DNA of 64,000 nucleotides, taken from positions 1-64,000 of the forward strand of contig NIVC01003356.1 of assembly GCA_002269645.1 (NCBI GenBank), read 5' to 3'. This DNA is from Macrostomum lignano. Lineage: Eukaryota. Under the pieces are notes generated by a model. The model was not told where the DNA came from and did not search any database. It was given only the letters and a program-made list of their open reading frames with translations. Below, one piece after another: positions 2,280 to 22,747 of the stretch; positions within the stretch are counted from its first letter, which is position 1; the number at the start of each line of letters is the position of its first letter. The translations under genes and the position numbers were made by a program.

Positions 2280-5200
2280 CAAACACTCAGGAAGCTCATC
2301 ACGGCCGCGTCCTTCGGCATCAGTAACTCCCACCAGCCCAGAAGTAGGAGCTGCACAATCTGTGAGCACTGCTCTGCAAAGCCTTCACGGCGCCGAAGTG
2401 CAGGCAGATGTCTCCGTGCGGGGTGAAACCTGGCGGACAGGGGTTGGCCTGGACGCCCCAGAGGGACACTTCCTCCGGCTGCAGAGACCGTTGGTGACGT
2501 GGATTGTGAGATGGATCGGCGTCAGCAGCACCGGAACTCGAATATCCAGCGGGCTGAGCTCTACTGAAGTGTGGGTAAAGGTGAACCGTCTGCCACAAAG
2601 CAACAACACTTTTTAAAGCTCGCCAGGAGTTTTTGTGCAACAACGATGGCAAGCAGCAGCGGCTACATCGCATCATAAGTTTTGAGAATTTTTGATCAAA
2701 AACTTTGACTAAAAAAATAAGACTCCCATTTCGCCAATGCATTCTGAAGCGAAAACGCCGATGGCCTCCAGCGAACTTTGGCACCACTTGCGAGTGCAGC
2801 ATCCTGCTTCAGTCGTTCAGCTGCCCCATCAGCAAATTATCCAAAAACCAAAACTCACCAGCCAGGGTTGTTCGTGAACTTGCAGAACAGACTCCTGTTC
2901 ACCAGCGATTTCACTGTAGGAGACGTAGAAGCTGAGAAAGGTAGTTCCGGTTCTGTTGACGATAATTCTGTTCAGATGGTAGAACAGTTCGAAGCTGATA
3001 TGAATTGATTTTTTATTCACAGCTGTCACATTGATGTCCGTGATGATCGCAGCATCTGAGGATTTAAAATGGTCGTTTGTTGCATGATTTTATTGAGTTT
3101 ACATAACAGCGATTGGGACGTATTTTGGCTCACTGGGATCTTGCGGAAAGCCGACCAGATCCAGCTTGATTTGGCGTCTGTAGCAACAATAGCGCGATTC
3201 AATCTTCAACAGTTGGGCCAGAATCGATCGTTGAAAGTTCAAGCGAATGATTTCAACGTCAGTGTAGTGAATATAGAGATAGGCCTGAAAAACAAGCAAT
3301 CGTAACTGGTTGTTCGGTGGCAAAAAATGTAAAAATTGAGATCTAATTGTTTATAAAGTAACCGTGAACAAATCACAGGTTAAAAATGTTAGTAGGACTC
3401 AAATGGCTTTTTCAAGTTTGAAGTAACTGACAAGCCAATAGAGCTCGACTGGAACAGCCTTTCGCTAAGTTTTTTCAGTGAATCTTACATTTAAATAATT
3501 GCACTGGCGGGATGTCACTCATCGACAGATTTCAGGTGGCTTTGGGAAATTTGTCATGGACATGGATGAACTGGATTGCTCACTGCGTTATAAAAGCATT
3601 ACGCTCTGATGGACTGTTGCAATGGTGAATACTACCAGCTAGACAGAGAGATGCGCGGTCTAAGTTCCTGGCTTTATTTATTTATTTACCAACAAAATTC
3701 TGATGATTTCTAGGTGACCAAATTTGAAGAATCCAAAGTCCAGTATATTCAACAAAGCGCAGCTTACACTTCTTTTACGGTCAATGTCTTCCAGATTCAT
3801 CAGCCGATCTTTGTTGCTATCAGGGCTGTAGTGAATATATATACTGCGACAACCACCGGAATACCTGTCGTGCTGCTGATAGGTCCCTCTGACAAGCGCA
3901 CCTGACAGGATAAATGCTTGAGGCAAGTAGATATAGATATATCTTGAGGCAAAAAAAAGCTAAAAAAGCTCTCGTCCCAGGAAAGTGGATCGGTATCGAG
4001 TAGGCATCTCCGCAGTAGTCACAAATGTAGGAGTTTGCGCCATCGTGGGTTACACCGGTAGGCGGATATCGCACCCCAAGTCCGGTGGCCACTTCGTAGG
4101 ACTGGGGCAGATAATCGGCCTCTGTGGCGTCTGGAACAGTTTTTGAAGGCAAACTATAATAGCATCATTAGTTTAAAGGAGTACTACGGCACTGTTGTAC
4201 ATCAATTCAACAAGGTCAACTCAAGCACCAACTGAATAACTAACTAACTAACTAACTAACTAACTAACTAACTAACTGACTAACTAACTAACTAACTAAC
4301 TAACTAACTAACTAACTAACTGACTAACTAACTAACTAACTGACTAACTAACTAACTAACTAACTAACTAACTAACTAACTAACTAACTAACTAACTAAC
4401 TAACTAACTAACTAACTAACTAACTAACTAACTAACTAACTAACTAACTAACTAACTAACTAACTGACTAACTAACTAATTAACTAACTAACTAACTAAC
4501 TAACTAACTGACTAACTAACTAACTAACTAACTAACTAACTAAACTAACTAACTGACTAACTAACTAACTAACTGACTAACTAACTAACTAACTAACTAA
4601 CTAACTAACTAACTAACTAACTATCTAACTAACTAACTAACTAACTAACTGACTAACTAACTAACTAACTAACTAACTAACTAACTAACTAACTAACTAA
4701 CTAACTAACTGACTAACTAACTAACTAACCAACTAACTAACTAACTAAACTAACTAACTAACTAACTAACTAACTAACTAACTGACTAACTAACTAACTA
4801 ACTAACTAACTAACTAACTAACTAATTAGCTAACTGACTAACTAACTAACTAACTAACTAACTAACTAGCTAACTAACTAACTAACTAACTAACTAACTA
4901 ACTAACTGACTAACTAACTAACTAACTAACTAACTGACTAACTAACTAACTAACTAACTAACTAACTGACTAACTAACTAACTAACTGACTAACTAACTA
5001 ACTAACTAACTAACTAACTAACTAACTAACTAACTAACTAACTAACTAACTAACTAACTAACTAACTGACTAACTAACTAATTAACTAACTAACTAACTA
5101 ACTAACTAACTGACTAACTAACTAACTAACTAACTAACTAACTAACTAAACTAACTAACTGACTAACTAACTAACTAACTGACTAACTAACTAACTAACT

Positions 5201-22747: not shown

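Follow-up and report, generated by a model that had tools for sequence, protein, structure and literature searches.

A predicted minus-strand gene of Macrostomum lignano for a secreted mosaic protein with C-type lectin-like and discoidin-type modules

The window analysed here comprises 64,000 nucleotides (nt) of the flatworm Macrostomum lignano (assembly GCA_002269645.1, contig NIVC01003356.1, positions 1 to 64,000), and the locus in question occupies positions 2280-22747 of its minus strand. In this range a bacterial-style list of open reading frames (ORFs) contains short, scattered entries only, as a preliminary description of this DNA had stated. That description named no strand. Stop-free segments of the minus strand hold recognisable protein pieces: at 22747 a start that resembles a signal peptide, parts of a C-type lectin-like domain (CTLD; CPDGW..., ...KFICQ) and several W..[IV]D[LF] and ...YG[CS] motifs. 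Exons were identified by reading the minus strand in three frames and enumerating AG/GT pairs in the required phase, combined with a splice and phase search. Twenty-four exons were obtained from ATG 22747 onwards, with AG...GT borders throughout and compatible phases (mostly 1-1); both the exon count and the 5' coordinate agree with the preliminary description. The locus is probably a single protein-coding gene of Macrostomum, about 21 kb long with 24-25 exons, which would encode a secreted mosaic protein of about 1,400-1,460 amino acids (aa).

The literal spliced ORF encodes 1,386 aa and stops at TGA 2322-2320. The 23 exons before exon 24 contain 1,297 codons without a break in the frame, and their GT-AG sites are intact. 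Introns measure 74-3,907 nt (the shortest 74-80 nt), and several are swollen by microsatellites of 1-2 kb. Phase 1-1 exon sets are a hallmark of exon-shuffled extracellular modules; since the modules of this protein lie mostly in such sets, they were read as exon-shuffled extracellular modules. Base composition separates exons (53.2% GC) from introns (41.0% GC), and nearly all exons are GC-richer than their own flanks.

Exon 1 (22669-22747; all exon coordinates refer to the minus strand) encodes aa 1-26, with the ATG and the predicted signal peptide MLKLFLRIFACCSVVGFWFAADAQSI, and ends in phase 1 at a GTGAGT donor. The N-terminus is hydrophobic and signal-like (MLKLFLRIFACCSVVGFWFAADA/QS) and provides the only hydrophobic window in the protein (aa 1-22), in agreement with the signal peptide proposed before. 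A further in-frame ATG lies 54 nt upstream, at 22801 (-), and would add 18 aa (MPNLQNHALLNYCFGQED) ahead of the signal peptide. Exon 2 (22144-22490; aa 27-142) encodes the N-terminal part of module D1, which is discoidin-like at motif level (DKWVRIYFPLNLTVTGF) and has no Pfam match. The C-terminal part of D1 is encoded by exon 3 (18080-18236; aa 143-194). Exon 4 (17096-17313; aa 195-267) and exon 5 (16443-16572; aa 268-310, ending ...IAVASVQGCKVN) form module D2, a marginal discoidin domain. Exon 6 (16200-16368; aa 311-366) encodes the N-terminal half of a first CTLD (CTLD-1, aa 311-443; CPDGW...) and ends in phase 2, and exon 7 (14363-14592; aa 367-443) encodes its C-terminal half.

For homologue detection, a pseudo-protein was assembled from the clearest pieces. 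It matched one database protein (E 4e-76), a 380-aa UniRef entry of M. lignano named 'C-type lectin domain-containing protein' (P0001). In tblastn, P0001 matches all of exons 2-7 (80-98% identity), and some of its stretches agree with other frames of the window. Identity is 98% over exon 3 (P0001 residues 110-157) and 80% over exon 4; exons 5 and 6 are matched as well, and the match of exon 2 (P0001 residues 1-110) is partial, P0001 being frame-shifted. The end of P0001 reads into the intron after CTLD-1 (…KYIGERQRL…), and despite its name the entry gives no score against Pfam Lectin_C. P0001 is thus best read as a truncated model, with frame shifts, of this gene or of a close paralogue. Word-indexed homologue searches found nothing with a 409-aa spliced query, and likewise nothing with a 1,186-aa spliced query; the latter stopped at 8,000 candidates, missed even P0001 and carries no weight.

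Exons 1-7 were used as a homologue-supported training set for frame tests. A codon table trained on these exons only preferred the predicted frame in 14 of 17 downstream exons (binomial p = 4.7e-5). With a position-specific base model, in which stop codons play no part, the figure was 15 of 17. Third codon positions are biased (A3 9%, C3 46%). The probability that an individual exon ORF is open by chance ranges from 2e-4 to 0.14.

CTLD-1 is the most firmly identified domain of the protein. It matches Pfam Lectin_C (PF00059) with 30.3 bits (cut-off 22.6) over profile positions 2-106 of 107 (aa 330-438). Concatenated stop-free fragments gave a weak Lectin_C match only, because introns split the domains. 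All 62 sequence matches in the PDB fall on aa 302-445; the best are the A chain of IX/X-binding protein (1.5e-8) and lithostathine (5e-8), with matches over aa 311-440. The conserved Cys framework (C0-C0', C1-C4, C2-C3) is present as CPDGW..SC, QFC, PNC, VTC and FIC, and these residues align with the Cys of the DC-SIGN carbohydrate-recognition domain (CRD). In classical C-type lectins an EPN or QPD tripeptide together with WND supplies the ligands for Ca2+ site 2 and the sugar. BLASTP alignment of CTLD-1 with the DC-SIGN CRD (E 4e-7) places EPN on A-P-N within GRPAPN and WND on M-V-D, both in exon 7, with a shorter loop between the two positions, before the third Cys. In this alignment the classical Ca2+-dependent sugar-binding motif (EPN/QPD plus WND) is absent from CTLD-1; the 'RPA/MVD' replacement described before is essentially right, the R-P-A being part of GRPAPN. 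The closest solved relatives are themselves CTLDs that do not bind sugar. Because the Ca2+- and sugar-ligating residues are mostly replaced, classical C-type sugar binding by CTLD-1 is predicted to be unlikely.

For the discoidin-type modules, each module was also scanned alone against Pfam at E <= 10, and a discoidin hidden Markov model (HMM) was built from seven reference domains, each validated by Pfam at 80-122 bits. Module D4 (aa 937-1059) is encoded by exon 16 (8012-8094; aa 937-964), exon 17 (7767-7910; aa 965-1012, ...RYFYVLYSTDGVSY) and exon 18 (7213-7354; aa 1013-1059, ...IVARSFRLL...RWMLYGC). It matches Pfam F5_F8_type_C (PF00754) at E 1.6e-4 and 22.2 bits over profile positions 17-124 of 127, which is below the gathering score of 28.2 bits. 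Against the discoidin HMM it scored 18.9 bits, a score reached by none of 500 shuffles, and hhalign gave 90.5% probability (E 1.4e-6) over 97 columns ending at the C-terminal ...LYGC. With this near full-length profile similarity, D4 can be classified as a real discoidin domain. D2 (aa 195-310) is a marginal second one: 8 of 500 shuffles reached its HMM score, while hhalign (E 0.011/0.009) ranked it better than all shuffles.

D1 (aa 27-194) aligned to discoidin in the right register in hhalign, its exon 3 part falling on the discoidin C-terminus, not better than shuffles. Module D5 (aa 1060-1195) is encoded by exon 19 (6902-7075; aa 1060-1117, VTASN...CW...PWIAIDF), exon 20 (6491-6630; aa 1118-1164, its middle) and exon 21 (6319-6412; aa 1165-1195, ending ...IKIAELEVYGSPL); hhalign placed it in register at E 0.04-0.06, not clearly above shuffles. 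Module D6 (aa 1196-1345) starts in exon 22 (4023-4130; aa 1196-1231), which follows a 2.2-kb intron made almost entirely of (TAAC)n, continues through exon 23 (2859-3055; aa 1232-1297; no profile support) and ends in exon 24 (2280-2589). It gave nothing in Pfam, the discoidin HMM or hhalign. None of the five modules other than D4 matched PF00754 at E <= 10, and an all-against-all phmmer comparison of the putative repeats yielded at most 3.2 bits, below shuffled controls. A MAFFT alignment of the six modules showed no conserved core and was meaningless, and the attempt at an internal-repeat profile was given up. A single-exon AF2 model of exon 2 reached a predicted local distance difference test score (pLDDT) of 35. 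The six discoidin domains proposed before thus reduce to D4 with profile support and a marginal D2; the other four are unsupported by profile, PDB or mutual similarity.

Exons 8-15 encode modules that resisted classification. Exon 8 (14040-14282; aa 444-524) is a single phase 1-1 exon for a four-Cys module; it shows codon bias in the predicted frame and has no Pfam or hhalign match. Exon 9 (12329-12451; aa 525-565, CMQPLLPG...VSASSS) resembles a discoidin N-terminus at motif level only. The Cys-rich exons 10 (12121-12252; aa 566-609) and 11 (11835-11915; aa 610-636), the latter of 81 nt and skippable without a frame change, are the least certain exons of the model. For aa 525-636 (exons 9-11), nothing was found in Pfam, with the discoidin HMM or by hhalign. 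A kringle considered for exons 10-11 was not confirmed; there was no Pfam Kringle match, and the Cys spacing differs from that of a six-Cys kringle.

Exon 12 (10215-10448; aa 637-714, QSS...HYWRLLVDL) and exon 13 (9911-10078; aa 715-770, ...LCGRYVVLLQ...HLGLQAEE; acceptor CTGAAG/AA) encode the module previously described as F-type lectin-like. Its hydrophobic and aromatic pattern (QSS...DG...WRLLVDL...GRYVVL) resembles an F-type domain by eye only: aa 637-770 had no Pfam match at E <= 10 (PF00754 and PF22633 being the related models scanned) and no PDB match, and hhalign to the discoidin references stayed at noise level. With these models and references the F-type assignment found no support. 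The FAMeT-like domain was placed on exon 14 (9464-9633; aa 771-827; its start) and exon 15 (8462-8789; aa 828-936; its main part), where the resemblance (...IKLTWSQTELNISV...VGYTTLGSG...) is again by eye only. Scanned alone, aa 771-936 matched neither PF12248 (Methyltransf_FA) nor PF00754, PF22633 or any other Pfam family at E <= 10.

An exhaustive phmmer search of 1.84 billion representative proteins with exon 15 recovered only two M. lignano fragments, A0A1I8F262 and A0A1I8GCT3 (P0002 and P0003; 43% identity, E 3.8e-9), and no FAMeT protein. Neither fragment has a Pfam match, and a profile of this family found no relative in the PDB. The single-exon AF2 model of exon 15 reached pLDDT 40. In P0002, a paralogue of exon 15, the sequence runs on after ...FDMP into ...YIQ, which is consistent with the exon 15/16 junction. 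The public M. lignano models P0001-P0003 (UniRef A0A1I8...) are fragmentary and frame-shifted, and misleading automatic names such as 'Pilus assembly protein PilW' and 'TonB-dependent receptor' occur in this family.

At the 3' end, exon 24 carries the end of D6 and the N-terminal half of a second CTLD (CTLD-2; CPPGFTPHGDIC...). Shortly before the stop, one frame reads CPPGFTPHGDIC...RLCSSYFWAG and, past a frame break, the next frame reads ELLMPKDAAVMSFLSVW. The reading across the break parallels CTLD-1 (...FCSEHTWGGVSGRLLDAKTAVERSFVAPP) with 11.1 bits, a score that 1 of 1,000 shuffles equalled. If the GGG run at 2329-2331 is lengthened by one G, the two frames become continuous, and reading proceeds via ...ELLMPKDAAVMSFLSV as far as a strong GTGAGT donor that follows 2280; this donor agrees with the CTLD-1 intron in phase (2) and in aligned position. 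Because the repaired frame leads into this donor, 2280 is an exon end, not the gene end, and the gene probably runs beyond it; the range given before holds at its 5' end and is incomplete at its 3' end.

From a phase-2 acceptor at 1687, a possible terminal exon of 61 codons (W-PPVEGSSSQLDC...AAC...ALC...) extends to a stop at 1507. This candidate exon 25 (1507-1687; phase 2; W-PPVEGSSSQLDCAVSSGSPAMLAACDSIPPRLALC...TEVN-stop) is a weak one. With it, CTLD-2 would become a complete, compact domain with six Cys and the protein would reach about 1,461 aa, so that the earlier length of about 1,460 aa is reached only with both the added G and this exon. The similarity of the C-terminal half of CTLD-2 (1687-1590) to CTLD-1 was not significant, and a base-periodicity scan favoured a different frame there. 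After repair CTLD-2 still had no Pfam match. Of the two C-type lectin domains described before, the first is solid, while the second appears as an N-terminal half only, recognisably paralogous to CTLD-1 and with a broken frame inside. Two other solutions for exon 24 were tried. Mini-introns for its frame changes were rejected, since they would need to be about 40 nt long, against the 74-80 nt of the shortest introns, and their phases do not fit. An exon start at 2558 in another frame brought no better discoidin scores, whether or not a G was inserted at 2456-2459.

The predicted protein (about 161 kDa, isoelectric point 5.9) contains 44 Cys and carries 21 N-X-S/T sequons, compared with 11.7 expected from shuffles. 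No transmembrane segment was found. Sequons, Cys content and the single hydrophobic window together suggest a secreted, soluble and probably N-glycosylated protein.

A number of observations weigh against the single-gene mosaic. The model was read from the genome sequence alone. As written, that sequence truncates the ORF inside CTLD-2 (at TGA 2322-2320), and a second frame change, dependent on the exon 24 acceptor, is possible at the GGGG run 2456-2459. The acceptors of exons 13 and 19 are weak, and exons 10-11 are dispensable for the frame. Exons 8-14 and 16-24 have no external homologue, most modules failed every profile test (Pfam, discoidin HMM, hhalign, mutual phmmer), and AF2 models of the two largest single exons reached only pLDDT 35-40. 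The function proposed below rests wholly on analogy. Part of this would be expected from a decaying or unprocessed pseudogene, i.e. a non-functional paralogue or allele whose 3' part has lost its frame, so that the protein would not be made as modelled. Besides the stop inside CTLD-2, such decay would fit the coding-like signal found in three different frames within 2600-2280, the missing Pfam match of CTLD-2 even after repair, the enlargement of introns by microsatellites of 1-2 kb and by an inverted-repeat element, and the 80-98% rather than 100% identity of P0001, which suggests recent M. lignano duplicates. We nevertheless consider a pseudogene rather unlikely: the 23 upstream exons stay open for 1,297 codons, keep their GT-AG sites and show strong third-position bias, and the second break is likewise repaired by one added G, so that both are cured by a single G in a G-run, which is typical of assembly error and not of random decay. 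Because both breaks sit in G-runs, the break in exon 24 is most simply explained as a one-base homopolymer undercall in the assembly.

The single chain could also be an artefact of phase-compatible joining of two or more adjacent genes, with exons 1-7, for example, standing apart. With mostly phase 1-1 junctions many alternative joins stay in frame, the only database model (P0001) ends just past CTLD-1, and external support covers only exons 2-7 and exon 15. A split of this kind is equally improbable, given that the downstream exons offer no second start codon with a signal peptide (the sole hydrophobic segment being aa 1-22), that strand and codon bias are uniform throughout, and that P0001, by reading into the intron, looks like a truncated prediction and not like a real gene end. 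A third reading overlaps with the single-gene mosaic and takes the preliminary description at its word, with every module a true divergent beta-sandwich (six discoidin domains, two CTLDs, FTP and FAMeT). The motif order recurs per module (ASS-like start, W..[IV]D[LF], Y.V.YS, hydrophobic stretch ending in G[CHS]), D1 and D5 lie in the correct register on the discoidin profile, and D2 is marginally significant. On the other side, the domains were expected to hold up in profile searches, and eight of the ten have no Pfam match even when scanned alone; scores of the unmatched modules equal those of shuffled sequences, and the exon 15 module found no FAMeT relative in the exhaustive search. This full set of folds is therefore doubtful, albeit less so than a pseudogene or a split locus. 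For the single-gene mosaic, the parts supported by the sequence are the signal sequence, one CTLD, one discoidin domain plus one marginal, and the start of CTLD-2. The locus is accordingly best described as encoding an ordinary lineage-specific extracellular mosaic protein, not a proven 'four-lectin-fold' giant.

The introns of the locus contain several repeats. (TAAC)x509 occupies 4237-6271 and (CTGA)x256 occupies 14728-15772. Arrays of a 21-mer at 10660-11101 and 19636-19909 lie in opposite orientations in two different introns. Intron 8 holds an element of about 1 kb (12825-13834) with nested inverted repeats (83-nt arms, 93%; 77-nt arms, 77%) and 121-nt direct repeats, which is probably a foldback or MITE-like (miniature inverted-repeat transposable element) transposon. 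Both of its strands read open (SIPGTRVPFIIVWSIGGD), and it misled automatic exon prediction: a splice/codon dynamic programme added exons at 13628-13584, 13427-13354 and 13136-12950, which were rejected for their position inside this element. The same programme missed exon 18, which is low-scoring and clearly discoidin. In intron 2, an Rfam Histone3 stem-loop (histone 3' untranslated region) was found at 19085-19131 (+) with 38.1 bits, above the gathering score (E 1.4e-7). Upstream of 19085 on the plus strand there is no intact histone ORF, only Lys-rich fragments in shifting frames, and the stem-loop may be the remnant of a decayed histone gene.

Elsewhere in the window, an intact single-exon ORF of 408 aa at 56429-57655 (-) encodes a rhodopsin-family G-protein-coupled receptor (Pfam 7tm_1, 82 bits); its exact sequence was not present in a collection of 15 billion proteins. 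A Gln-rich ORF at 61964-62746 (-) runs at its end into an Ets DNA-binding domain, of which it covers the first half (Pfam Ets, 42.7 bits, profile positions 1-41 of 81); this exon belongs to an ETS transcription factor whose coding sequence goes on past a splice site. An exon at 29575-30033 (+) encodes the C-terminal part of a GH59 (galactocerebrosidase-like) catalytic domain (127 bits), and a 467-aa reverse-transcriptase ORF at 39116-40519 (+; Pfam RVT_1, 94 bits) is a retrotransposon fragment. Next to the latter lie tandem satellites of about 13 kb in all (41-54 kb), which are open in all frames. The receptor, Ets, GH59 and reverse-transcriptase neighbours place the window in an animal DNA context.

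By analogy, an extracellular binding or adhesion function is suggested for the mosaic protein. Roughly 60% of its chain would consist of modules of about 80-170 aa with discoidin- or galactose-binding-like motifs; the unmatched ones may either have diverged beyond detection or, like the exon 15 module, represent Macrostomum-restricted families. In the manner of other multi-module discoidin/CTLD proteins, the protein may bind glycans, lipids or matrix proteins multivalently outside the cell. Possible settings would be mucus, adhesive secretion, extracellular matrix or pattern recognition. A more specific version is offered as a tentative possibility: Macrostomum-restricted module families (the exon 15 module, the four-Cys exon 8 and the Cys-rich exons 10-11) might fill the unclassifiable two-thirds of the chain, shuffled as exons with a discoidin domain and a CTLD devoid of the sugar motif into a new type of flatworm secreted binder with ligands other than glycans, e.g. 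a component of mucus or of an adhesive or reproductive secretion.

If the model is true, the locus adds another lineage-specific CTLD/discoidin mosaic to the large repertoire of secreted binders in invertebrates, here in a flatworm that serves as a model of regeneration and of temporary adhesion. In practical terms it is of modest value, as a candidate for in situ hybridisation or RNA interference screens of secretory cell types. It further provides an example of a CTLD without classical sugar ligands and a lineage-restricted module worth structure prediction. For annotation, public Macrostomum protein sets contain this locus in fragments or not at all, and homopolymer indels may cut gene models short there.

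Compared with known systems, CTLD-1 shares the six-Cys framework CP.GW...C / FC / NC / TC / IC with the CTLD superfamily. Its best PDB relatives, the IX/X-binding proteins of snake venom and lithostathine, belong to a non-canonical CTLD branch; there the domain forms a small dimeric protein, whereas CTLD-1 is embedded in a mosaic of 1,400 aa. Sea urchin Nectin consists of a signal peptide and six tandem FA58C domains (984 aa), which are 47-55% identical and all score as FA58C (PMC10057474). Like Nectin, the flatworm protein would be secreted, without membrane anchor, and built of tandem discoidin-type modules. Unlike in Nectin, its repeats have no significant mutual similarity, one, perhaps two, of them score as discoidin, and CTLDs and unclassified modules are interspersed; a signal peptide is present, six tandem and mutually similar FA58C domains behind it are not. 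The architecture had been described as unlike that of any characterised protein. A secreted six-discoidin plan is already known from Nectin, but repeat similarity and partner domains differ.

Lectin/discoidin combinations recur in adhesive secretions (PMC10057474). In M. lignano itself, the adhesive protein Mlig-ap1 joins a C-type lectin domain to vWD, C8 and TIL modules, EGF arrays and repeats rich in Lys and Arg (PMC6410801). The mosaic protein gave no detectable sequence similarity to Mlig-ap1, and none of these partner modules is present in it. What the predicted protein would share with Mlig-ap1 and other temporary-adhesion proteins (Sfp1) is the general plan of a large, secreted, Cys-containing chain in which a C-type lectin domain is linked to further modules for interaction with proteins and carbohydrates (PMC6410801).

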